From positions 1 to 64,000 of IMG/VR virus record IMGVR_UViG_3300021511_000003: 64,000 nucleotides of DNA. One strand, written 5' to 3'. The position numbers were made by a program, and so were the translations under genes. The notes beneath the pieces were generated by a model. That model was given only the letters and a program-made list of their open reading frames with translations. It did no database searches and was not told where the DNA came from. Below are positions 2,438-51,944 of the stretch, piece after piece (within the stretch, counting starts at the first letter, position 1; each line of letters starts with the position of its first letter).

Positions 2438-4390
2438 ATGGCTGCTAATGTTTCGCCAGGAGTTTTTAGTAAAATTATAGACCTTTCTCAATTCGTTCAA
2501 GCAGTACCATCAACAATTGGATTTATTGCTGCCCTTACTGAAAAAGGTGAGGATAATGTATTAAAATTTATCGGTTCAAGATCTGATTATATCAGCGAGT
2601 TTGGTGAACCAAATATTTCTACTTATGGAAAACAATATGGGCAAGGACCATATTGTGCATATAATTATTTGGGAGAATCAGGTGCTTTATATTTCATGAG
2701 ATGCCTGCCTGATAATGCAACATTTTCAAATATTAGAATTGATACAACAGTTGGAGCAGGTGACTCAACCGCTGGGTATCAAATTACATTTGTGGAAGGA
2801 ATGAATTCACAATCTGAACTTAAAAGCAATTTACAGCAAGATGGAACTACATATCCAATTTGTTTCTTATATCCAATTGGAAGAGGTCAGTGGTATAATA
2901 AATTAGGTGTAAGAATCACAGAGGTATCTAATCCAACTATTTGGGAGCAATATATCTTAGATATCTATGAAAAACAATCTGATGGGCAAGATGCAATTAT
3001 TGAATCATTTGGTATTTCATTTGAACAAAATGCTAAAGACACAGGTGGAGAATCTATTTGGATTGTTGATGTTTTGAACACATATTCATCTGTATTAAGA
3101 GCTGAAATGTATGTCGATGAAAATCTAGATATTAAATCAGCTGGTTATAATGAAAATATCAAATTTTATGATAAAGATATTGATACAAATGTTAGAGTTA
3201 CCTTAACACCTGGCTCAGCAGATATCACAGATATTAAACAAGATTTTTCAGATTGGGAAGGTTCCGCATCAGGTAATTTTGTTATTATTGCTAAAGATGG
3301 TAAAGGTAATGAAATTTGGGGTTGGTTAGGAACTGCCGGTGGCGTTGATGATGAAGTTATTACAGTATTTTCAGAAGTGTCACTATCAACACAATCATGG
3401 AATGGTTCTATATCAGAATTTGATGATGGAAGTACCATTGAATATCGTATTAAGAAATCATATGGTTCCGTAGTAGGTGCATTTGCATCAGCCAACCCTG
3501 TTCCATTAAGAAAGGGTGGAGATGGTGATTTGTTACAAGCTGATGGTTCATTAGATACAGTAGAAGCTACAACTTTATTGAACCAAGCCTATAATGGTAT
3601 TATTGATGATAATGTTCTCGATAATGAAAATATTTATTTTTCAATGGTATTTGATTGTGGTTATCCAGCGGATGTAAAATCAGCTATCAGTACATTATGT
3701 CAAACAAGACGTGACTGTGTTGGTATTTTAGATAATGGTGATAATTCATCTGCTAATTTAGCACTTACTGCAAGAAATAATGTTAATACTTTTAATAATT
3801 ATTTTGTTGCTCTTTATGAATCATATAATAAAGTATTTGATCCATTCACAGGTCAAGACGTTTGGTTTTCACCTATTTATCATATGTCTTATATTTTGCC
3901 AAGAAATGATACTGTTGCTGAACTTTGGTATGCAGCAGCAGGTTTCAATAGAGCAGCAATTGATACTATTAAAGAACAACGTTATAATCCAAGACTTGGT
4001 CAAAGAGATCAACTGTACTTAAAACAATTAAATCCAATTGTAAAATTTAATCCGGGTTATGTTGTTTGGGGCCAGTTAACCTCTCAAGCTAAAGCTAGTG
4101 CTCTTCAAGATCTTAATATTGTTCGACTTGTTTTATATATCAAGAGAGCGTTTGAAGACTTCTGTAGATTTTTCATCTTTGAGCAAAATGATGCAATCAC
4201 TTGGTCATTAGTATCAGGTAAATTGGTTGACTTTCTCGAAGTAATCAGAAAGAAACGTGGTCTTGTAAATTATACAATAGATGTTGGAGCTACAGAGTAC
4301 GAACAACGTACTAAGAGATTCCATGTCAATGTAACATTAGAACCTACAAGAACTGTTGAACAAATTGAATTGAACTTCTTTATAATATAA
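2438..4390 (+). CDS. Contractile tail sheath protein (T4 gp18-like)
   Basis: N-terminal SPGVFSKIIDLS; C-terminal WYAAAGFNRA, LNIVRLVLYIKR, FIFEQND, LEPTRTVEQI. Confidence 0.93.
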   Translation: MAANVSPGVFSKIIDLSQFVQAVPSTIGFIAALTEKGEDNVLKFIGSRSDYISEFGEPNISTYGKQYGQGPYCAYNYLGESGALYFMRCLPDNATFSNIRIDTTVGAGDSTAGYQITFVEGMNSQSELKSNLQQDGTTYPICFLYPIGRGQWYNKLGVRITEVSNPTIWEQYILDIYEKQSDGQDAIIESFGISFEQNAKDTGGESIWIVDVLNTYSSVLRAEMYVDENLDIKSAGYNENIKFYDKDIDTNVRVTLTPGSADITDIKQDFSDWEGSASGNFVIIAKDGKGNEIWGWLGTAGGVDDEVITVFSEVSLSTQSWNGSISEFDDGSTIEYRIKKSYGSVVGAFASANPVPLRKGGDGDLLQADGSLDTVEATTLLNQAYNGIIDDNVLDNENIYFSMVFDCGYPADVKSAISTLCQTRRDCVGILDNGDNSSANLALTARNNVNTFNNYFVALYESYNKVFDPFTGQDVWFSPIYHMSYILPRNDTVAELWYAAAGFNRAAIDTIKEQRYNPRLGQRDQLYLKQLNPIVKFNPGYVVWGQLTSQAKASALQDLNIVRLVLYIKRAFEDFCRFFIFEQNDAITWSLVSGKLVDFLEVIRKKRGLVNYTIDVGATEYEQRTKRFHVNVTLEPTRTVEQIELNFFII

Positions 4391-4447: not shown

Positions 4448-4942
4448 TTATGGAGATAGTGGTTTACCCAATGGTACAACTGATAACGAATGTTTTAATG
4501 ATCCATCTAAAATTTTAGTTGTGTAAACCAAATATACTAACATATTCATTTTTTTATCATAGAATCTAGCAATTTTCATTACCTTTGATCCAATGGATTT
4601 ACTGATGTGAGTAATGTTTGTTCTTGTTGTTTTATCAACTACCATTTTTCCATTTTTAATGGGGATTTCCCCTGTAAGTCTTGCTGCAATTGCTGTGTTA
4701 CTGGGGTCTGCTATTGCGAACATTCGACCAGATTTGATTGTTGTGAAAACAATTGAAATGAATGGATTATCAGGATCTTGAACCCTAATTATTTTTATTT
4801 TATCCCCACCTTGAATTAATCGTTTAACACATTCAACTTCACCAATTTGAACAATTGCATCATTTCCTGCAAACGATTTATTTACACCAATCATACCAAT
4901 CATAACAAGCACTATACATGTGAGTTTTACATTTTTACTCAT
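4448..4942 (-). CDS. creA: CreA family protein (exported)
   Basis: Signal-peptide-like N-terminus; DKIKIIRVQDPD, ADPSNTAIA, ARFYDKKMNMLVYLVY, DGSLKHSLSVVP parallel CreA as I recall it. Confidence 0.7.
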   Translation of the reverse strand: MSKNVKLTCIVLVMIGMIGVNKSFAGNDAIVQIGEVECVKRLIQGGDKIKIIRVQDPDNPFISIVFTTIKSGRMFAIADPSNTAIAARLTGEIPIKNGKMVVDKTTRTNITHISKSIGSKVMKIARFYDKKMNMLVYLVYTTKILDGSLKHSLSVVPLGKPLSP

Positions 4943-4950
4943 AATTTTCC

Positions 4951-5502
4951 CTAATCAATTTTAAATTCATTTTTATTAACTTCTATTTGAAATTTATATA
5001 TATCATTCATAGCATCCCATGATTCATCAATAATTTTATTATTTAATAGTGGTACTATATTAATGATGAGAAAACTAATTGCATGTTGCTCTTGTATATA
5101 TCCGGATTTATCATTCTCGTATCTTTTTGAAAGTTGTTTATATTCAATGTTGGACCTTCTTAGAGGATTATAAATATTTTTTATAATAAGATTCAATTCA
5201 CTTATTAATTGAAGAAAGAATAAACATGTATTTGAATTTATATTTGGATTGTTCATAGAACTAAATAATGCTGAGTTGGCAACTCCATCTGAAATAATTG
5301 ATAGCTGCTTTAAATTAATGTCTTTCAATTCAAATAATCCAATATGTTCTCTCATAGATAAATGACTTTGAATATCAAAATCTGGAGGGATAGCTACAAA
5401 TTCTGCTAAAACATAATTATCTATAGTACTTTGATCGATCATCTCATGAGAATTATCGATAGGTAGACTATCACGGTTTTTACTGGTCGGTTTTATAATC
5501 AT
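4951..5502 (-). CDS. Hypothetical protein
   Basis: Start moved from 5628 to the ATG at 5502 to avoid a 113-nt overlap with the upstream gene. Confidence 0.5.
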   Translation of the reverse strand: MIIKPTSKNRDSLPIDNSHEMIDQSTIDNYVLAEFVAIPPDFDIQSHLSMREHIGLFELKDINLKQLSIISDGVANSALFSSMNNPNINSNTCLFFLQLISELNLIIKNIYNPLRRSNIEYKQLSKRYENDKSGYIQEQHAISFLIINIVPLLNNKIIDESWDAMNDIYKFQIEVNKNEFKID

Positions 5503-5515
5503 TTCATCTTTATAA

Positions 5516-6016
5516 TTAATGTTGACTGACTTTGATATATGGGAGTCCACCCCAGTCGTTGTCGTGTTCGAGGTCAGAAAAGAATTCACCATCTTCATCA
5601 CCGTATTGAAAAAAGTATATATATCCATTATTCTCCTCTAGTAATTTTTTGCCTTTATTTAAAGCATCATTTTTTTGTATCATATCTATTTCATCATCAC
5701 ATTGTTTTTGCCATGCTTGATTATGCCATAAGTCCCTTTCTGTTATTCCTTCTCGCTTACAAAAAGTTTTAGAGTGGTCCCATGATGAAATAATTCCATC
5801 AACCCAACCTGAACACAGAACTTCAATAATTTGTGGCAAAGCTTCTGGTCCAGCTTTTAATGGTTTTTGTTTGATGCCATCGGTAAATATTTGTTTTTGA
5901 AAATCAGGTCTACTTATATAACGAGATACATTTTTTTCATTTTCAATCTTACATGGCCAAATAACAATGAATGAAGAAGAACTTGAGTTAGTTACAAAAT
6001 CACTTTTTATTTTCAT
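5516..6016 (-). CDS. TNSSS-motif protein 1 (N-terminus MKIKSDFVTNSSSSSF)
   Basis: ORF track; motif shared with 47769-48149 and 51663-51944; 1 nt downstream of a radical SAM gene. Confidence 0.8.
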   Translation of the reverse strand: MKIKSDFVTNSSSSSFIVIWPCKIENEKNVSRYISRPDFQKQIFTDGIKQKPLKAGPEALPQIIEVLCSGWVDGIISSWDHSKTFCKREGITERDLWHNQAWQKQCDDEIDMIQKNDALNKGKKLLEENNGYIYFFQYGDEDGEFFSDLEHDNDWGGLPYIKVSQH

Positions 6017-6017
6017 T

Positions 6018-7016
6018 TTATAATCCTAGTGGGCATGAGTATCTATTATTGTTTAATGATTCTCTAAATAGTTGAAATGGGGATGTATTATTCCAGATAT
6101 ATTCAATGTCGTGATCGTTTGTTATGGGAACTGACCACAAATTCTTATCTGCAAAACTACATGGCATAAGTCGCATATCTGGAGTTATATATGCTGACAT
6201 TCGTGCCGCTTCACAGGAATCAATTGACATTTGTTGTAGTTTATTTGGAGTAACATATTTTAAAACATGATTTACTAAACAGCTATCCATTCCAATTTTA
6301 AATTTACTTTGTGGTTTGAAAACAACTTCTGAAAATTTTTTCAATTGGTGGGGTTCGGGTACCCAATCAAGGTTTACACCTGCACCTGCTGGTTTGAATA
6401 ATAGAAATATAACAGCATTTAATTTATCAATATCAACCAAACTCGATTCACCTTCTTGCCAAGGGTTTTCTCCAGATAATATTTGTACTGCCATATTATA
6501 TGATTCTTTTGAAAAAATTGTATGGATGTTAGTTTTAACTCCAGCATTCAATAATTTTTCAATGGCATTATATGTATACTCTTTACAATAATTACTAATT
6601 GCAACCGCTCCACACACTTTTGATATTTCAATATGTTTATCTGTTAACCCAATACCACTTGTTGTATAGTTTGGTGTAACCCCATTATCTTTGGCATATG
6701 TCACAATTTTCTCAAATTCTTCATGCTGATTAGGATCACCTCTACCACCCAAAGCAACTTGGTTTGTGTGATGTTTAGTTTGATCTATTATTATTTTGAA
6801 ATTATCAAATGACATGTTTGGTTCATTGATATGACCTTGATAACAAAATTTACATTTGTTTTTACAATGACCCATAATTCCAACGTCAATTAATGAGGGA
6901 AGATATAATGAAAAAGGATCTTCTTTTCCAGTTGTTCCTCTTAGTACTTCAACACCGGTTGCAGTGCTAAAAAATAATTCATAGTCATTATTTTTAAAAA
7001 ATTTATTGAATATCAT
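6018..7016 (-). CDS. Radical SAM enzyme with SPASM/twitch-like C-terminus
   Basis: CKNKCKFC (CxxxCxxC); GGRGDP; C-terminal SCEAA...ITPDMRLMPCSF. Confidence 0.9.
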   Translation of the reverse strand: MIFNKFFKNNDYELFFSTATGVEVLRGTTGKEDPFSLYLPSLIDVGIMGHCKNKCKFCYQGHINEPNMSFDNFKIIIDQTKHHTNQVALGGRGDPNQHEEFEKIVTYAKDNGVTPNYTTSGIGLTDKHIEISKVCGAVAISNYCKEYTYNAIEKLLNAGVKTNIHTIFSKESYNMAVQILSGENPWQEGESSLVDIDKLNAVIFLLFKPAGAGVNLDWVPEPHQLKKFSEVVFKPQSKFKIGMDSCLVNHVLKYVTPNKLQQMSIDSCEAARMSAYITPDMRLMPCSFADKNLWSVPITNDHDIEYIWNNTSPFQLFRESLNNNRYSCPLGL

Positions 7017-7420
7017 AATTTTTTCATGCCGATTTCGTTGTTTGGCTTTTCTTTCTCAATGGGTTTAATTTTTTCCACCACTTCGTCTTCAATGGTTTCT
7101 TTTTCAATAGGTTTTTTTTCTTCTTTGATATCTTGTGTCTTGTCATTTCTCTCCTCGCCCTTTATTTTAATTTCATGTACAACAATGTCTACACCATCTT
7201 TTATAATATTAATACCATCCTTCATAATTACTTTTGTTTTTTTACCAAGTTCTTTAAATTTTATTTCTAAAGATGACCTCCCTGTTGTAACCTTTTGGTT
7301 AACTTCTGTTTTAACTTGGTTGATTTTTTTTTCATCGTCATGGTCATTTATTACAATGTAGCTTATGATAACAACAATAATAATTGGCCAACTAACAATA
7401 AATCTAATTATTTTACTCAT
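7013..7420 (-). CDS. Membrane-anchored hypothetical protein, Lys/Glu-rich
   Basis: N-terminal hydrophobic helix; charged tail ending GMKKL. Confidence 0.7.
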   Translation of the reverse strand: MSKIIRFIVSWPIIIVVIISYIVINDHDDEKKINQVKTEVNQKVTTGRSSLEIKFKELGKKTKVIMKDGINIIKDGVDIVVHEIKIKGEERNDKTQDIKEEKKPIEKETIEDEVVEKIKPIEKEKPNNEIGMKKL

Positions 7421-7570: not shown

Positions 7571-8065
7571 ATGAAAAAAGTCAAAGATAATGAGGCGGTT
7601 GGAGGGTTTGCTATCGACTCGTTTCCACGAAAAAAGAAACAGAAAGATAATAGAGTTGTATACCCAGAAATTAAATCTGAACCGATATTTAAAAGAGCTA
7701 TGATTGATCTTGATGGTACTATTCATAGATATTCTCAGGGTTATAAAAATGGTGAAATCTATGATGATGCGTTTGATGGAGCTAAAGAGGTCATAGAATG
7801 GTTAAAACAAAATGGGTACGAGATAGTCATATTCACTACTCGAGCATCAAAACAAAATGCTAAAGAATTTGGTGGTAATGATCAAGAACAAATTAAAAAT
7901 GTGGGTAAATGGTTAACTGATAAAGGTATTTATTTTGATAAAATTACTGCTGAAAAACTTGCAGCGGATTTTTATATCGACGACAAAGCCATCAGTATTT
8001 CGAATGGTAATTGGAAAGCAGTTTTAAATGTAATAAAAAAACGTATAAAGTACAAAGTTGTATAA
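7571..8065 (+). CDS. HAD-superfamily phosphatase (capless, nucleotidase/PNK-phosphatase-like)
   Basis: DLDGT motif I, FTTR motif II, KLAADFYIDDK motifs III/IV. Confidence 0.8.
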   Translation: MKKVKDNEAVGGFAIDSFPRKKKQKDNRVVYPEIKSEPIFKRAMIDLDGTIHRYSQGYKNGEIYDDAFDGAKEVIEWLKQNGYEIVIFTTRASKQNAKEFGGNDQEQIKNVGKWLTDKGIYFDKITAEKLAADFYIDDKAISISNGNWKAVLNVIKKRIKYKVV

Positions 8066-46720: not shown

Positions 46721-47767
46721 TTATTCTCCCCGTTTATCAGAGTGTACTAACGTATTTACTCCTTCTTCTGTTTCATCAAGATATTGACTCATCATCAAGC
46801 ATGAATGATTACAGGATTTACAATAATATTGCTTGTCTGACACTATTGCATTGAATACATACGCAGATATAAGATGTGGATCTGTTTTATCAAACAACTG
46901 TGTTACATTCAATTCTGGACTCGAAACACCCTTGATTCTCAAACATAATCTAATTGTTCCATCTGCATCAATTGAAATATTATGCAAACCTTGTTCCAAT
47001 TTGCAATCATAATTTGTTGGTAATGTATTAAACATTTTTGGGATTAAAATGTCTTTCATATGAACATATAAAGATAGATTGTTTACAATATTAACCAACT
47101 CCTCTGCTAATCTGAATGTTGGTTGAACTAATGTTTTTATATCCCAAACATTTGAAAAGTCGTAAAATGGACTTTTTGCAATATCAACAAATGTAATATC
47201 GCTATATATGTTATTCATACTCAACTGTTCTACGAGTTTATACAATAGATGTTGATTATGATTCATAACTGTTATTTCAGCCACAACATCCTTAACTTTA
47301 CCTGCTTCCTGAATCTCCTTCAATCTTTTGAGACCTTCAATGCTTTTCATTACTCGATCTTCATCTGCACCGATTTCATTAAAGATTGGATCCACTGAAC
47401 TCGTAAAACCTTCTATATGATCAACCTTATCAAATAACTTTTTGATTAATGGTTGAATTGTTGGGGTGTTGTTCGTAATAATGGTATAGTAGATTTCATT
47501 GTCATTACAATAATTTATAATATCAGGTAGATCAGGTCTTAATAATGGTTCACCACCATAAAATATATGAAACACATCTGGATTGTGAACCTTAAATGCT
47601 GCAAGGGTTTTAATAACAACTTCTGTTGGCATTTCATTTTTGATATAATGTTTCATATCAGGATATAGATATGGTTTTCCATTATAGTTTCTCACAATAG
47701 CACAATATTCACATTCAAGATTACATTTTCTTGTGAGAAGCCAATTTACAATTCTTACTTGACTCAT
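46721..47767 (-). CDS. Radical SAM enzyme with SPASM/twitch-like C-terminus
   Basis: CNLECEYC, YGGEPLLR, C...ISIDADGTIRLC, CKSCNHSC. Confidence 0.92.
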   Translation of the reverse strand: MSQVRIVNWLLTRKCNLECEYCAIVRNYNGKPYLYPDMKHYIKNEMPTEVVIKTLAAFKVHNPDVFHIFYGGEPLLRPDLPDIINYCNDNEIYYTIITNNTPTIQPLIKKLFDKVDHIEGFTSSVDPIFNEIGADEDRVMKSIEGLKRLKEIQEAGKVKDVVAEITVMNHNQHLLYKLVEQLSMNNIYSDITFVDIAKSPFYDFSNVWDIKTLVQPTFRLAEELVNIVNNLSLYVHMKDILIPKMFNTLPTNYDCKLEQGLHNISIDADGTIRLCLRIKGVSSPELNVTQLFDKTDPHLISAYVFNAIVSDKQYYCKSCNHSCLMMSQYLDETEEGVNTLVHSDKRGE

Positions 47768-47768
47768 A

Positions 47769-48149
47769 TTATTCTCCAGTTATACTTAATGTTTGACCAC
47801 CACGTTCTTCAATTAAATCAAGGAGTTTTTCATGCCTTTCATGATTGTGTCTATTCATGACCACATAGATAGCATATAATCCTCTATCCAATGCTATACA
47901 TGAAATATCATAACAATGTTTATCCATCTGACTAAATACAGAAGGAGTATTCCTTGCTTTTGATATCCAATCGTTTTTGCCTTTTTCTGTAAAATGAATA
48001 AGACTTTTTTTATTTTTGAAACATCTAAATGTTTCACCCCAATATAACTTGAGATGTTTTTCAATATATTTTCTCAAAATTTTATTGGGGGCCTCAAAAA
48101 CATACATAGTAGATGAACTGTTTGTGTTAAAGTCTTGTTTGATTTTCAT
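47769..48149 (-). CDS. TNSSS-motif protein 2 (MKIKQDFNTNSSSTMY)
   Basis: Shared motif; 1 nt upstream of the radical SAM gene. Confidence 0.75.
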   Translation of the reverse strand: MKIKQDFNTNSSSTMYVFEAPNKILRKYIEKHLKLYWGETFRCFKNKKSLIHFTEKGKNDWISKARNTPSVFSQMDKHCYDISCIALDRGLYAIYVVMNRHNHERHEKLLDLIEERGGQTLSITGE

Positions 48150-48156
48150 AATATGC

Positions 48157-50367
48157 CTAATGAAGTGTTAATGTTTCATCAGCTTCCAATTGATCTTCAT
48201 GACGATGAGAAATCAATACTATTGATTTACCAAACTTCAAGTTTGATAACACTTTAGATACATAACCAATATTTTCTTCATCAAGACTATCAAAAATTTC
48301 ATCAAATAGTAATATATTTATTGATACATCTTGAATAGTCTCTTGTAAATTACCAAGAGTTAAAATAGTAGCAATATCAATAATTCGTGTTTGACCGCCT
48401 GATAATTGAATTCTTGAATTTGCTCGAGTATGTGTATCAACAACATTCACTGATATTTTATCTCTGAACTCGCCAGCTTTGGTTGATGCTAGTGTATCAA
48501 ATGACACAATATATCGCCCGTTTGTAAACTTATCTAAATAATAAGCTACCTTTTCATTCATAAATGGTATTGCTTCATCAATTAACATTGATGGGATACC
48601 CGAAGATGAGAAAGCTGTTTTCCAAAATTCAAGTATTTCACATTTTCTAATCAGTTTTAATTGTTTACTTTTAAAGTTTGTCGACTCTTTTTCAAGATCA
48701 ACTACTCGTTTATGATATAATATAAGTTGTGTTTTATCATATTTAACTTTTTCTTTTTCCGTTATTTGCATTTTTTCTTGACTTATATTATTTTTCAGAG
48801 TTTCGATTTTTGTATGTATATCATTCATTTCTTTAATTACTGCTTCTTGATCTTTTTTCTTTTTTTGCAATAATATTTTGGTTGATTCAAGCTCATGTGT
48901 TGATTTTTGTATTGCAGTTTCTTTTTGTTCTTTCTCATTTGATACTAACTTATTAACTTTATTAATTGTATTAGTTAATCTAAGATCCAATTGTTGTAAT
49001 TCAATTTTTTCTTTTGATATTAATTCATTATTTTCGTTTATAAGTCTATCAACACACAAGTTTAAGTCATCTGTCTCTTTAATTATTTTACTATTTAAAT
49101 CATTCATTTTTTCTTTTAATGTAATTATTAATTTATTTGCTACATCAATATTTATATTGAACTTATTAACTTTTTGTTGAAGTATATCAATTGTTTGATC
49201 AGATACTTTTTGTTCACATAAAGGGCATTCAGCAACACCAGCTTCAATTACATTTGTTTGAATTTCATTTATTCTTTCTTTCCAATTATTAATATCAGAA
49301 TAATTATTGTTAATTTTTAATTCAAGTTTATGCTTTCGAGCCTGACTTGTTGTAATAAGATCATTTCTTATTTCTTTTAATTCTGCTTTTTCTTTTATTA
49401 TACGATCATATTCGACTCTGAATTTAGATTTGATTTTTGTCTTTGCATCATCTACAGCACTTTTTAACTCAAGCATTTTACTTATTTTTCGTTGATCAAT
49501 TAATTTGAGCTCATTATAAAGTTCTGTTTGAAATGTTTTTATATGTGAATCAATATCTGCAAGTTCTGACACAGTATTTTCAATATCAGTATCTTCTTTT
49601 TCAAAATTTTTAAATGTTTCTTGCCATTTTTCTAACAGATGTTGATTTACTTCAATTGATTTTTTAAGTTCTGCTATAGCAGTTTCTTTTTCTGTTTTAT
49701 ATTTTTTCTCTACTGCTAATAGGATCTTAATTTGTTGGTTTGCATCTTTATTAAGTTCATCATTAATCGCCAGTTGCTTCTCAATCGCAGAGAGTTTCTC
49801 ATTAACTATTTTTAAGCGTTTGTCAACTTCTTTGTAATAAATTTGATATAATTCTAATGCTAATAGTTCTCTAAAGATTAATTTCTTATCAGAGTCAATT
49901 AAATCTGTAAAGAAGTCTTTCACCTTTTGTCCAAACATTAATGTGTTCACAAATGCTCGTTTTGAACAAATTAACCGTACAATTTCAGGGAGTACTTCTC
50001 TATGACCTTGTTTAATATCAACATTGTTTTTATTCAGAATAACTGTATTACCGAGTCTGGTATATTTTTGATATCGAGTTATTAAATAATTATCTGAGTC
50101 AATTTTAAACTTAACCCATGTCTTACAATCTTTACCTGTAATATTATTTACAACATCATCACCTTTTGCTCCACGACTTGTAACTCCATATAATGTATAT
50201 GGTATTGCATCAAGACACATTGTTTTACCAACCCCATTTGGGCCAGTCATCAAAACCATAGTGTTATTTTTAAATTGTAATATCATCGGGTCAAGATATG
50301 GACCAAAATTTTCCATTCCTACTTCTTCAAAATCAATATGTCTCATATCACACCTCACAATTTTCAA
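48157..50367 (-). CDS. sbcC: SbcC/Rad50 (gp46-like) ATPase
   Basis: GPNGVGKT, coiled coil with CPLC zinc hook, LSGGQ, LLFDEIFDSLD, ISH. Confidence 0.93.
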   Translation of the reverse strand: MKIVRCDMRHIDFEEVGMENFGPYLDPMILQFKNNTMVLMTGPNGVGKTMCLDAIPYTLYGVTSRGAKGDDVVNNITGKDCKTWVKFKIDSDNYLITRYQKYTRLGNTVILNKNNVDIKQGHREVLPEIVRLICSKRAFVNTLMFGQKVKDFFTDLIDSDKKLIFRELLALELYQIYYKEVDKRLKIVNEKLSAIEKQLAINDELNKDANQQIKILLAVEKKYKTEKETAIAELKKSIEVNQHLLEKWQETFKNFEKEDTDIENTVSELADIDSHIKTFQTELYNELKLIDQRKISKMLELKSAVDDAKTKIKSKFRVEYDRIIKEKAELKEIRNDLITTSQARKHKLELKINNNYSDINNWKERINEIQTNVIEAGVAECPLCEQKVSDQTIDILQQKVNKFNINIDVANKLIITLKEKMNDLNSKIIKETDDLNLCVDRLINENNELISKEKIELQQLDLRLTNTINKVNKLVSNEKEQKETAIQKSTHELESTKILLQKKKKDQEAVIKEMNDIHTKIETLKNNISQEKMQITEKEKVKYDKTQLILYHKRVVDLEKESTNFKSKQLKLIRKCEILEFWKTAFSSSGIPSMLIDEAIPFMNEKVAYYLDKFTNGRYIVSFDTLASTKAGEFRDKISVNVVDTHTRANSRIQLSGGQTRIIDIATILTLGNLQETIQDVSINILLFDEIFDSLDEENIGYVSKVLSNLKFGKSIVLISHRHEDQLEADETLTLH

Positions 50368-51376
50368 TTATATCAAATACTTCTTGTTCATATTCAATTT
50401 TAAAATTATCCGGGATTTCTTTGATTTCAAGATAACGTTTTATTCTATCTTGTTGAGACATTGTACTTGTTATGCCTCTATCGGTTATATCAGTTTCTGT
50501 TTTATCAATAATATTAAATTTTCCTTTGAATGGAGTTGTATCAACACGATCATCCAAAATAACTTTTACATGATGCCCATTTTCTTTTGCTTCTTGAGCA
50601 GATTTTAATGCATCATTTGTATTGTCGCTTCTTACATGAATTTCAATATGTTTTTTATACTGTGTTAATGGGATTGATTCAACATCAAGAGTATCTGAAT
50701 CAACAATCAAAAATCTTTTTTCTTCACCTTTTTCGCCCCAATCTAATTGAATTAATGAACCAACATAATAAAGAGCAAAACCTTCTTTTATAATTTCTTG
50801 AGGTTTATGATAATGTCCCAGTAATACTAATTTATAGTTTTTTACCAAATCTGCCACGCTAATATCAGATATAATACTCATACCTGAGTTCAAAACTCCT
50901 TCACTTAAACCAAAATGTGAAACAAGAATTTTAGCTTTGTTTTCTTTCACAACTTGTGGTACATTATATGAGTAAGGAACAAATAATATATCTTCATCAT
51001 CCATTCTATATGTTGTATTATGAGGAATCCAGTTAACACCTGGTATTGAATTAATAGATTTTAATGCTGAAACAACAGTTTGACCCTTACCAGATAAATC
51101 ATGATTTCCATCAATTACATAAAAGTTAATAAATTTACCATAGTGAGTAAGATACTCAATTATAAGATCTTGGGCAATTGCATAAATTATCGACTTTCCA
51201 TGAAGTATATCACCACCAATAATAATAGTTGAAATATCATGACTAATAGAATAGTCTACAACTTCGTGTAAAGCTAATTTAATACTATGCAATCGTTCAG
51301 GAAGATTTGATGCATATTCAATTTTATCTTGAGCATATCTCGAAAGATGTATATCTGCAATATATGCAAATTTCAT
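50348..51376 (-). CDS. sbcD: SbcD/Mre11 (gp47-like) nuclease
   Basis: ADIHL, GGDILH, DGNHD, SHF, LGHYH, YVGSL. Confidence 0.92.
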   Translation of the reverse strand: MKFAYIADIHLSRYAQDKIEYASNLPERLHSIKLALHEVVDYSISHDISTIIIGGDILHGKSIIYAIAQDLIIEYLTHYGKFINFYVIDGNHDLSGKGQTVVSALKSINSIPGVNWIPHNTTYRMDDEDILFVPYSYNVPQVVKENKAKILVSHFGLSEGVLNSGMSIISDISVADLVKNYKLVLLGHYHKPQEIIKEGFALYYVGSLIQLDWGEKGEEKRFLIVDSDTLDVESIPLTQYKKHIEIHVRSDNTNDALKSAQEAKENGHHVKVILDDRVDTTPFKGKFNIIDKTETDITDRGITSTMSQQDRIKRYLEIKEIPDNFKIEYEQEVFDIIENCEV

Positions 51377-51636
51377 AATTTCTTATTTACTCCTTTTGTT
51401 TTAAGATTACCTTTATAATTTTTGTCAGTGGGTTGAGTCTGTTCATTTGTATTATTCAATTGTTCTTCTTGTTCTTGAGTTATAACATTTTTCAATAGTG
51501 AACCATCGTTACTCGTAGGCCAAATATTTAAAAGACCTGGAAGTATCAGTGCTGCAAATATAGTAATTAATACGATAACAACTAATACTTCAACCAATGT
51601 AAATCCTTTACAACTTTTCACTTTTTGTATTAACAT
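51373..51636 (-). CDS. Type IV prepilin-like protein
   Basis: KGFTLVEVLVVIVLITIFAALILP: G|F cleavage site with E at +5. Confidence 0.8.
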   Translation of the reverse strand: MLIQKVKSCKGFTLVEVLVVIVLITIFAALILPGLLNIWPTSNDGSLLKNVITQEQEEQLNNTNEQTQPTDKNYKGNLKTKGVNKKL

Positions 51637-51662: not shown

Positions 51663-51944
51663 TTAATAACTTTCATATTTTATATTGTCTCTATCAACAC
51701 CGATTTCTGATAAAATCCATAACATATCAAAGTTATCCATACTTGTTGAACCTTCAATTGTATCTTTGGTTTCTGTTATCACCCATCCACTATTGGTAGA
51801 TGATCCAATATTATATCGATGATACATTTTAGCATATTCATAATGATGTTTAATTAAAAGTATTTGTAGTTCTGTAATATTAATCTTTTGAATTATAAAA
51901 CTAGCTGATGAACTGTTGGTTACGAAATCTGATTTTATTTTCAT
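51663..51944 (-). CDS. TNSSS-motif protein 3 (MKIKSDFVTNSSSASF)
   Basis: Shared motif; ATGA overlap with the upstream gene. Confidence 0.75.
   Translation of the reverse strand: MKIKSDFVTNSSSASFIIQKINITELQILLIKHHYEYAKMYHRYNIGSSTNSGWVITETKDTIEGSTSMDNFDMLWILSEIGVDRDNIKYESY

Follow-up and report, generated by a model that had tools for sequence, protein, structure and literature searches.

Radical SAM enzymes that mature peptides or proteins are well known, and several of the systems already described bear on the locus examined here. SuiB/StrB-type SPASM enzymes (PDB 5v1q) install the Lys–Trp cross-link of streptide in a ribosomal polypeptide that is encoded next door, whereas the anaerobic sulfatase-maturating enzymes (anSME/AtsB), likewise SPASM-type radical SAM enzymes, act on a short motif of full-length proteins, with many different clients per enzyme. 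In multi-precursor RiPP systems (e.g. NHLP/Nif11-type) one enzyme serves several paralogous substrates in tandem that share a conserved recognition segment and are otherwise divergent. In addition, about 5% of Avs2 homologues are encoded with the accessory proteins Avap1, a radical SAM protein, and Avap2. In the KpAvs2 operon Avap1 was found to be needed against T2, makes no viperin-type nucleotides and could not be given a role, and a small accessory protein binds the STAND protein (Béchon et al. 2024, PMC11564622). We have here analysed a 64,000-nt stretch (the window), positions 1 to 64,000 of the 223,015-bp record IMGVR_UViG_3300021511_000003 of a T4-like phage, in which otherwise unrelated small proteins sharing a conserved N-terminal tail are associated with radical SAM genes (Table).

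Table. Genes and coding stretch of the window that are discussed in the text.
Feature	Coordinates	Strand	Length (aa)	Description
Upstream small protein	7013..7420	-	135	First gene of the rs1 operon; N-terminal membrane helix and Lys/Glu-rich tail
rs1	6018..7016	-	332	Radical SAM enzyme, SPASM/twitch-like; proposed maturase of the tail-bearing proteins
Client A	5516..6016	-	166	Tail-bearing protein of family phrog_7397
Tail of client A	5969..6016	-	16	Coding stretch for M-K-I-K-S-D-F-V-T-N-S-S-S-S-S-F
Client B	47769..48149	-	126	Tail-bearing protein directly upstream of rs2
rs2	46721..47767	-	348	Second radical SAM enzyme, only remotely related to rs1
Client C	51663..51944	-	93	Tail-bearing protein not adjacent to a radical SAM gene

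The three tail-bearing proteins, here termed clients, start with MKIKSDFVTNSSSSSF (client A), MKIKQDFNTNSSSTMY (client B) and MKIKSDFVTNSSSASF (client C), sharing M-K-I-K-x-D-F-x-T-N-S-S-S. A six-frame scan of the whole record found TNSS[ST] at an ORF start only at these three places, and for a 13-residue string the chance expectation is effectively zero. The first 48 nt of the three genes agree at only 27–34 positions, with Ser codons switching between the AGT and TCA/TCT classes, Phe codons between TTT and TTC, and Thr codons between ACT, ACC and ACA, so that conservation is at the protein level. Across 220 distinct tails the consensus is M-K-[ILV]-K-x-D-F-[VI]-T-N-S-S-S-x-x-[FY]. Beyond about residue 17 the proteins are unrelated: BLAST clustering and hhalign on N-terminally trimmed subfamily alignments found nothing convincing, the best being a 54% probability for one pair around a shared ‘GDE’ loop, and we treat the bodies as unrelated. 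The observation made in a sequence-only reading, namely three small proteins with a shared N-terminal motif conserved at the protein level, the first starting 1 nt after the stop of a radical SAM gene, was thus confirmed. Not mentioned in that reading, the client B gene ends 1 nt before the start of rs2, and two of the three copies are therefore translationally coupled to a radical SAM gene. The record has four radical SAM genes in all, and by a rough estimate, assuming about 330 genes and hence about 8 radical SAM-adjacent slots, chance adjacency of two of three would be on the order of 0.002. Client C lies about 4 kb upstream of rs2, beyond the gp46/gp47-like genes.

Both enzymes belong to the radical SAM superfamily, with rs1 scoring 34 bits against PF04055 (cut-off 29.5) and rs2 54 bits. 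rs1 also matches phrog_7293 at 6e-28, and in an alignment of 49 sequences C51, C55 and C58 of the CxxxCxxC cluster motif and the C-terminal C246, C268, C286 and C328 are invariant. Its SPASM score (PF13186) falls just short of the cut-off (21.0 against 21.5 bits), although bacterial and archaeal family members reach 29.5 and 27.5 bits and TIGR04085 gives 32.4 against 27. Having only four invariant C-terminal Cys fits one auxiliary cluster (twitch-like) better than the full seven-Cys SPASM pattern. The best solved relative of rs1 by sequence is SuiB (E 1.6e-9, rs1 profile positions 50–325 against SuiB 134–426), with which it shares the CxxxCxxC cluster and C-terminal auxiliary-cluster cysteines; its nearest solved relatives, SuiB and SkfB, are RiPP maturases. 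Since the alignment starts at SuiB residue 134, after the RRE, and only about 45 residues precede the cluster, rs1 has no N-terminal PqqD-like RRE domain; moreover, there is no KGDGW motif, all NCBIfam scores are far below family cut-offs, and the presumed substrate is the extreme N-terminus of 90–200-aa proteins of many unrelated families, predicted to be folded, rather than a short leader-core peptide. In rs2, C15, C19 and C22 as well as C255, C275, C316, C319 and C323 are invariant, but there is no PF13186 hit, only about 14 residues precede the cluster, and the best solved relative is MoaA. hhalign of rs2 against the rs1 family gives 63% probability over the N-terminal half only.

Among the clients, only client A has a named family in the libraries searched: it matches phrog_7397, annotated as of unknown function, at E 5e-8 on profile positions 1–30, with both profile ends (1–30 and 127–170) matching in the genome search, whereas clients B and C do not match, and Pfam, NCBIfam and PADLOC give no family for any client. 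In family A (the family of client A), K4, D6, F7, V8, T9, N10, S11–13 and F16 are invariant, as are several C-terminal residues (Y134, Y138, E150, P159 and the final H166) within a conserved YGDEDG...EH stretch, and 2,569 cluster representatives match at E<=1e-3. AlphaFold predicts client A at pLDDT 89.8 but leaves residues 1–10 below 50, and similarly predicts client B at 86.8 with residues 1–11 below 50, such that the tail is predicted to lie outside two different client folds. The client A model had no significant match in PDB (Foldseek), in AlphaFold DB clusters or in the VIA wide search, which returned only helical-hairpin matches at Z<6; a profile search of solved structures with family A found nothing, and the ESM Atlas returned only unnamed, mostly viral clusters. 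The body of client B looks weakly ferredoxin-like, with matches at TM 0.4–0.5 only.

The association between tail and enzyme extends far beyond the window. Of 80 family A phage loci, 78 carry an rs1 orthologue, and the other two are cut off on the upstream side, where rs1 lies. Many of these loci hold tandem arrays of 2–6 tail-bearing genes from at least 10 subfamilies with no similarity beyond the tail. An orthologue of client B sits immediately upstream of the rs2 orthologue in 11 of 12 loci, the twelfth being truncated. Members of the client C subfamily hold the same position in rs2-containing relatives, but lie inside the rs1 cluster in three of the phage loci (L088, L091 and L094 of our survey). 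In cellular genomes, a scan for the tail found 29 loci in many bacterial and archaeal phyla, and in 20 of them a 107–138-aa (mostly 131–138) tail protein is immediately followed by a 343–402-aa ORF with CxxxCxxC, of which the ones scanned are radical SAM, some with a SPASM domain; two more are arrays with a radical SAM gene in the cluster. The co-occurrence proposed as a test in the sequence-only reading was also approached from the enzyme side: in 400 evenly sampled Bacillota genomes all 7 canonical rs1-family enzymes have an adjacent tail gene, while four divergent paralogues with altered Cys spacing have none. Nevertheless, eleven tail-bearing viral contigs, all of them fragments (1–53% complete), show no radical SAM gene, and a few cellular loci (L224, L241 and L248 of the survey) have tail genes with no radical SAM gene within the flanks retrieved.

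Co-occurrence without adjacency was seen among 50,697 cultured phage records, where rs1-like enzymes (171 records) and family A clients (175 records) show the same genus distribution (Klebsiella 108/115, Enterobacter 20/20, Cronobacter 14/14, Citrobacter 11/11, Escherichia 9/9, Raoultella 2/2, Pseudotevenvirus 2/2, Buttiauxella 1/1). Cultured E. coli and Klebsiella T4-like phages (RB16, KP15, Matisse) carry both genes 20 kb apart. In Matisse, a six-frame PF04055 search found only a 163-aa hit, which would have made this phage a counter-example, but the rs1-family profile detects the enzyme at 91440–92426 with E 1e-53; PF04055 alone under-detects this family. No rs2 homologue was found in cultured phages. 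Much of the phage co-occurrence comes from related T4-like lineages and is therefore not independent. Both unrelated clients of RB16 and of Matisse carry the same rare tail variant (R4, G6, S9), and in the Slopekvirus enzyme checked (Klebsiella phage Miro, same genus as Matisse) the otherwise invariant predicted contacts K161 and K240 are Q and G, although this covariation argument rests on one lineage.

Co-folding of rs1 with client A gave a score of 0.42, against 0.00 for the best of 3 controls, which amounts to weak support only. The mark was reached by 58 of 80 solved complexes and 2 of 110 mismatched pairs, but at 0.60 or under by only 7 of those 80 solved complexes and by both mismatches that passed, and the three runs share only 32–50% of contacts. 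The predicted interface places client residues 1–8 in the enzyme barrel against rs1 residues 20–27, 33, 42, 86, 88, 114, 116, 136–137, 161, 163, 200–201, 240, 263 and 266, many of which are invariant from phage to bacteria.

In bacteria, the rs1-family enzyme and a tail protein lie directly behind a STAND NTPase with variable N-terminal effectors, the arrangement described for the Avs2–Avap1–Avap2 operon. The radical SAM proteins of these operons are 31–37% identical to rs1 over its full length, and eight of eight STAND proteins upstream of the pair hit PADLOC Avs2 models at E 1e-17 to 1e-32, whereas no such gene flanks either pair among the ORFs listed for the phage window. The bacterial loci seen here have four genes (STAND, small protein, tail protein, radical SAM), while three are described for the published operon. 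Avap2 has been reported, using HHpred, to be similar to DUF6375 (PF19902); with HMMER, neither the tail protein nor the other small protein of the bacterial loci matched PF19902. The tail protein encoded directly before such enzymes is an obvious candidate substrate for the unexplained Avs2-associated radical SAM, on the presumption that Avap1 is a member of the rs1 family.

We favor, with moderate confidence, the explanation that the tail is a portable tag delivering otherwise unrelated small folded proteins to a dedicated radical SAM/SPASM-type enzyme, which would bind the free N-terminal ~10 residues in its barrel and modify them after translation. In this view, rs1 would serve client A and probably client C, and rs2 would serve at least client B, or add a second modification. 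What the analysis establishes is the motif, its conservation at the protein level, its tight and phylogenetically broad linkage with the rs1-family enzyme, and a predicted position outside the client fold; that the tail physically docks, and that catalysis takes place on it, are inferred from sequence and structure prediction alone. Since the nearest solved relative of rs1 by sequence is SuiB, a radical cross-link or dehydrogenation involving K4, D6, F7 or T9 is the most plausible guess as to the chemistry. Two very different enzymes recognizing one tail would be unusual, and the conserved C-terminal residues of family A, which suggest that it has its own activity, are not explained by this hypothesis. 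Because the same pair sits in bacterial Avs2-like STAND immune operons, the phage copies probably act in the phage–host conflict, in one direction or the other. The interpretation put forward in the sequence-only reading, a phage post-translational modification system in which the Ser-rich motif is a modification site or recognition leader for several clients, was partly supported. Its core, the tail as a recognition or modification element linking several unrelated clients to a radical SAM enzyme, holds in three independent gene arrangements and across phages, bacteria and archaea, but modification itself remains an inference, the serines are not singled out as the site because the predicted contact lies upstream of the Ser run, and the system is not phage-specific. 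The analogy drawn there with Ser/Cys-to-formylglycine conversion by anSME/AtsB does not hold, as the tail has no C/S-x-P/A-x-R motif, the closest solved relative of rs1 by sequence is the Lys–Trp cross-linking enzyme SuiB, and no anSME model appears among the NCBIfam matches listed for rs1 or rs2. Compared with the multi-precursor RiPP systems, the shared segment is here only 16 residues at the very N-terminus, and the divergent parts are domains of 80–180 residues, predicted to be folded and with their own conservation, instead of short cores.

Other explanations can be considered, though all appear less likely. The tail might dock onto the enzyme without being its substrate, the clients being interchangeable adaptor or regulatory subunits that bring a protein, nucleic acid or metabolite bound by the variable body to the enzyme, or that gate its activity. 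This unlikely but not negligible possibility rests on the same co-occurrence and docking evidence, and would fit the variable bodies, which look like binding modules, the conserved C-terminus of family A and the small accessory protein of the KpAvs2 operon, which binds the STAND protein rather than being an obvious peptide substrate. However, the co-fold puts the tail beside the SAM-binding strands (Q86, A88, G136, A137, N163, N200), where substrates sit, and not on an outer surface, and the extreme conservation of nearly every tail residue is more typical of a substrate than of a docking strand. It could also be that the system is RiPP-like in reverse, with the conserved N-terminal ~10 residues as the core peptide and the body as a follower or carrier, the modified tail being cut off near the Ser run as a small bioactive or signaling peptide. 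The tail is predicted to be flexible and ends in a Ser-rich stretch before the first strand, SuiB and SkfB are RiPP maturases, and some Avs2-like operons carry trypsin-like domains, but no protease is consistently linked, there is no reason for 2–6 different well-folded carriers to deliver one identical peptide, and the conserved bodies imply that the body itself is the functional product, making this reading improbable.

Still less likely is that the tail has a function unrelated to radical SAM enzymes, such as a degron, a translation or export signal, or a capsid-targeting sequence like MKTYQEFIAE of T4, the adjacency then reflecting conserved synteny in one phage lineage. The phage is T4-like, client C is not next to a radical SAM gene, and the tail superficially resembles the T4 internal-protein targeting sequence (M-K-x-x-x-[DE]-F-[IV]). 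Capsid targeting was rejected because the same tail occurs in chromosomal and plasmid Avs2-like operons of bacteria, which have no capsid; in addition, the tail has no Glu and hence no L/I-x-E prohead-protease site, and it is linked to the enzyme in three different gene orders, in genomes where the genes are 20 kb apart, and in all 7 canonical rs1-family cases in the sampled Bacillota. Self-cleavage at the Asn-Ser-Ser-Ser stretch in pyruvoyl or N-terminal-nucleophile fashion, which the sequence-only reading had offered as an alternative, is very unlikely. Although N10 and S11–S13 are invariant and lie just before the first strand of each client, a position geometrically reminiscent of self-processing enzymes, the client bodies are unrelated, the two predicted folds differ and neither matches a known self-processing fold, so that no common self-processing machinery exists; nor would this explain the invariance of residues 1–9, which would be discarded, or the link to radical SAM enzymes.

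A more far-reaching possibility, which we consider doubtful on present evidence but of great interest if true, is that the tail and the rs1-family enzyme form a previously unrecognized protein-maturation system acting on the extreme N-terminus of many unrelated folded proteins, used by bacteria inside Avs2-type immune operons and copied and expanded by T4-like phages into diversifying client arrays that interfere with, or mimic, that immune module. On this reading the tail protein would be the missing substrate of Avap1. If the phage arrays prove to act on host immunity, this would be a new class of conflict genes. A 16-residue N-terminal tag shared by dozens of unrelated folded proteins and tied to one enzyme family from T4-like phages to bacterial and archaeal genomes did not turn up in the Pfam, NCBIfam, PHROGs or PADLOC copies searched, and literature searches for the motif string and for phage radical SAM precursor systems found nothing relevant; an eLife 2020 paper on conflict systems describes a different radical SAM–peptide pair with a C-terminal FxSxx peptide.

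Scans for a T4 late-promoter motif and for sigma-70 promoters and terminators around the rs1 operon gave nothing above background. The first gene of this operon encodes the 135-aa protein, which has no Pfam or NCBIfam family and is unrelated to the small protein of the bacterial operons (hhalign probability 0.1). Its stop codon overlaps the rs1 start (ATGA). A small ORF ending at the rs1 start was found in 46 of 66 related phage loci, mostly of 120–140 aa, and those inspected have the same membrane helix and Lys/Glu-rich build.

The viral record, of which the window covers the first 64 kb, is 223,015 bp long with 30% G+C, and the window carries T4-like genes, among them a tail sheath gene, gp46/gp47-like genes and a UvsW-like helicase gene. 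The sequence-only reading had noted three small, otherwise unrelated proteins that begin with the same N-terminal motif, hereafter the tail, and this observation held up on re-examination: three minus-strand ORFs start in this way (clients A, B and C), and a six-frame scan of the whole record found no other ORF that does. The three tails use different synonymous codons, with only 27-34 of the first 48 nt identical, reflecting, as had been claimed, conservation at the protein level and not recent duplication. Client A begins 1 nt after the stop of a radical SAM gene, rs1, which in turn overlaps the stop of a gene for a 135-aa membrane-anchored protein, whereas client B ends 1 nt before the start of a second radical SAM gene, rs2. 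The genome has four radical SAM genes, and neither of the other two is near a tail gene. The positions of these and neighboring features are collected in the table.

Coordinates of the features in the window, elsewhere in the record and in related loci
Location	Strand	Feature	Length (aa)	Remarks
window 2438-4390		Tail sheath
window 4448-4942	-	CreA-like protein	 	NF008026, E 3e-15; hydrophobic N-terminal segment resembling a signal peptide; closes the rs1 operon
window 4951-5628	-	ORF of unknown function	225	As called, overlaps the end of client A by 113 nt
window 5516-6016	-	Client A	166	phrog_7397
window 6018-7016		rs1, radical SAM
window 7013-7420		Membrane-anchored protein	135
window 7571-8065	+	HAD-type phosphatase-like gene	 	Capsule biosynthesis phosphatase subfamily, weak match; transcribed divergently from the rs1 operon
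window 46721-47767		rs2, radical SAM
window 47769-48149	-	Client B	126
window 48157-51376		gp46/gp47-like genes
window 51373-51636	-	Protein with prepilin-type N-terminal cleavage/methylation domain	87	TIGR02532, 29 bits; between the gp47-like gene and client C
window 51663-51944	-	Client C	93
whole record (G000), about 143.6-146.1 kb and 184.1-184.8 kb		Third and fourth radical SAM genes	303 and 240	Third MoaA/W-maturase-like, directly after a KDO8P synthase gene; fourth QueE-like; outside the window (loci L008 and L010)
Matisse 91440-92426 (KT001918; locus L015)		rs1-family enzyme	 	E 1e-53 with the rs1-family profile
Matisse locus L015, 4844-7060		gp116, von Willebrand factor A protein	738	Between the two tail-bearing genes
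RB16 locus L262, 5862-8081		RB16p109, von Willebrand factor A protein	738	Between the two tail-bearing genes

Apart from the tail, the clients are unrelated. Client A belongs to a large family that matches phrog_7397 and for which 2,569 representatives were found at E<=1e-3, but no Pfam or NCBIfam model matches it; its N-terminus is invariant, and conserved residues lie near the C-terminus. When all tail-bearing ORFs were collected from related loci and their first 20 residues removed, the ORFs fell into at least ten BLAST clusters, which show no convincing profile-profile similarity to one another. AlphaFold models of family A (pLDDT 89.8) and of the client-B family (pLDDT 86.8) have different architectures, and neither matches a known fold convincingly. 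In both models the body is confident, but the invariant residues 1-10 or 1-11 score below 50, and the first strand starts at residue 13. The most conserved segment of these proteins is therefore predicted not to belong to their fold, which is what one would expect of a segment that works by binding something else.

The link between the tail and radical SAM enzymes is broad. In related phage contigs, 78 of 80 family-A loci carry an rs1 orthologue on the same strand, usually immediately upstream, and the two exceptions are cut off on the upstream side, where rs1 lies. Many of these loci hold arrays of two to six tail genes from different subfamilies around rs1, for example six in the phage locus L088 and five in L082. 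For rs2, 11 of 12 loci have a client-B orthologue ending at the rs2 start, and the twelfth is truncated. Members of the client-C subfamily lie near rs2 in some phages and inside the rs1 cluster in others. A scan of viral contigs for the tail alone returned at least 119 stretches; of the 77 new loci analyzed, about half show a 330-370-aa CxxxCxxC ORF within the stretch examined, a further 22 contigs carry such a gene elsewhere on the contig, and the 11 without one are fragments estimated to be 1-53% complete.

The tail is also found in cellular genomes, namely in Bacillota, Bacteroidota, Campylobacterota, Nitrospirota, Desulfobacterota-like, Spirochaetota and Ignavibacteria, and in archaeal MAG contigs. 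In 20 of 29 such loci a tail protein of 107-138 aa (mostly 131-138) is followed at once by a 343-402-aa CxxxCxxC ORF; those that were scanned are radical SAM, with a SPASM domain detected in some. Seven of these bacterial enzymes, aligned with rs1, are 31-37% identical to it over the full length. Three contigs binned as Thermoplasmatales and Promethearchaeota MAGs (L225, L235 and L248) hold arrays of three to six tail genes, two of them with rs1- or rs2-like enzymes 53-55% identical to the phage enzymes, and look like viral or proviral contigs binned with archaeal genomes. We also approached the association from the enzyme side. In 400 evenly sampled Bacillota genomes, 11 have an rs1-family gene at E<=1e-25; all seven with the canonical CxxxCxxC have a tail gene beside them, whereas the four with an expanded Cys spacing have a different neighbor. 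This sister subfamily of rs1 (Bacillota loci L266-L269) has a C-x7-C-x6-C cluster motif and is preceded by a 290-340-aa protein instead of a tail protein.

Among 50,697 cultured phage records, rs1-like enzymes (171 records) and family-A clients (175 records) have matching genus counts. Yet in Matisse the genes are 20 kb apart, and in Miro no tail gene lies within 3.5 kb of the enzyme. Since this co-occurrence comes largely from one T4-like lineage (Slopekvirus and Pseudotevenvirus were checked directly), it counts as one observation, but it does show that the pair persists without adjacency. The Matisse enzyme was found only with the rs1-family profile, a six-frame PF04055 search giving a false negative, so that surveys defining radical SAM neighbors by PF04055 alone will undercount this family. 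In these enterobacterial T4-like phages, Matisse and RB16, a von Willebrand factor A protein lies between the two tail-bearing genes; vWA proteins are common in conflict systems.

Docking of the tail on the enzyme was probed by co-folding rs1 and client A, each with its own alignment, and received only weak support: the score was 0.42, the best of three controls reached 0.00, and the three runs share only 32-50% of contacts. In the benchmark of the method the mark was reached by 58 of 80 solved complexes and by 2 of 110 mismatched pairs, but at a score of 0.60 or under by only 7 of those 80 solved complexes and by both mismatches that passed. The confident part of the predicted interface is client residues 1-8 against rs1 residues 20-27, 33, 42, 86, 88, 114, 116, 136-137, 161, 163, 200-201, 240, 263 and 266. 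Of these, G21, A88, G136, A137, N163, N200 and K240 are invariant across 49 aligned sequences, including the bacterial ones, and Q86, K161 and A201 are nearly invariant. These residues lie on the strands that carry the SAM-binding motifs, which is where substrates sit in this superfamily. One lineage supplies a natural experiment: in RB16 and Matisse, both unrelated clients carry the same rare tail (R4, G6, S9), G6 occurring in only 2 of 220 distinct tails, and in the enzyme of Klebsiella phage Miro, of the same genus as Matisse, K161 and K240 are replaced by Q and G in well-aligned blocks. Loss of the Asp of the tail together with loss of two pocket lysines would fit a salt bridge, although this is a single event.

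The rs1 enzyme has the radical SAM cluster cysteines and four invariant C-terminal cysteines. Its SPASM score is just under the Pfam cut-off, while relatives pass it. Its best solved relative by sequence is SuiB, the streptide Lys-Trp cross-linker, aligned without the recognition domain of SuiB, and SkfB comes next. Matches to NCBIfam models (W-cofactor maturase, PqqE, NirJ2, MftC, WgkB and the KxxxW maturase) are all far below their cut-offs. Thus, rs1 belongs to the peptide- and cofactor-modifying SPASM/twitch group, but to no named family. In contrast, rs2 is only remotely similar to rs1 (63% hhalign probability, over the N-terminal half only), has MoaA as its best solved relative, and has no homologue in the cultured phages searched. 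The presence of two different enzymes next to the same tail strengthens the tail-enzyme link, and they may or may not make different modifications.

In bacteria the pair forms the end of a four-gene operon encoding a 730-1074-aa STAND NTPase, a 121-142-aa protein, the tail protein and the radical SAM enzyme. The NTPases carry variable N-terminal effector domains (trypsin-like, lipase/DUF676, nucleoside deoxyribosyltransferase-like and SMEK), and all eight tested match the PADLOC Avs2 models. In two Tissierella-related contigs with identical downstream genes (L256 and L257), the trypsin-like effector is a separate 249-aa gene in one assembly and is fused to the STAND NTPase (979 aa) in the other. 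One locus sits beside genes provisionally read, from N-terminal sequence only, as type I restriction-modification. Béchon et al. (PMC11564622) described a Klebsiella Avs2 operon with a radical SAM protein (Avap1) and a small protein (Avap2, with an HHpred hit to DUF6375), and found such partners beside about 5% of Avs2 homologues. They showed that Avap1 is needed against T2 but not SECphi18 and that it makes no viperin-like nucleotides, and left the roles of both proteins open. The operons found here very probably belong to that class, although this is inferred without comparison to the KpAvs2 sequences themselves, and neither small protein of our operons matches PF19902 by HMMER. The 135-aa protein encoded upstream of rs1 in the phage is unrelated to the bacterial small protein. 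What phages and bacteria share is just the enzyme and tail-protein pair.

Taken together, the tail is most likely a portable recognition and modification tag. In this view, the radical SAM enzyme would take the free N-terminal ~10 residues of each client into its barrel and alter them by radical chemistry, and the Ser run would join the tag to the first strand of whatever domain follows. The motif, its distribution and its linkage to the enzymes are established by our analysis, whereas the unplaced tail and, weakly, the docking rest on prediction, and catalysis on the tail is an inference. Given the affinity to SuiB and the invariant K4, D6, F7 and T9, an intramolecular cross-link or a dehydrogenation is the leading guess for the product, but it remains no more than a guess. 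The interpretation offered by the sequence-only reading, that the tail is a modification site or recognition leader serving several client proteins, is thus supported only in part. Nothing supports its analogy with the conversion of Ser to formylglycine, and its alternative of a pyruvoyl-type role is unlikely, because the tail has no sulfatase-type motif, the predicted contacts lie upstream of the serines, and the clients share no fold that could self-process. It could also be that the tail protein is an adaptor and not a substrate, that the modified tail is released as a peptide, or that the tail has a function unrelated to the enzyme, but these possibilities appear less probable. The system is best placed among radical SAM maturase-substrate systems, in which its unusual features are an N-terminal tag, many folded clients, and presence on both sides of the phage-host conflict.

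The CreA-like gene that closes the rs1 operon is also present after the clients in the related loci L003 and L004 (PF05981), although a link to the pair is no more than a possibility. For the ORF overlapping client A, the equivalent gene in relatives is called at 174-196 aa, so the true start is probably a later ATG. Finally, as with the prepilin-type gene next to client C, a PF07963 N_methyl gene appears near the rs1 locus in the related locus L006.
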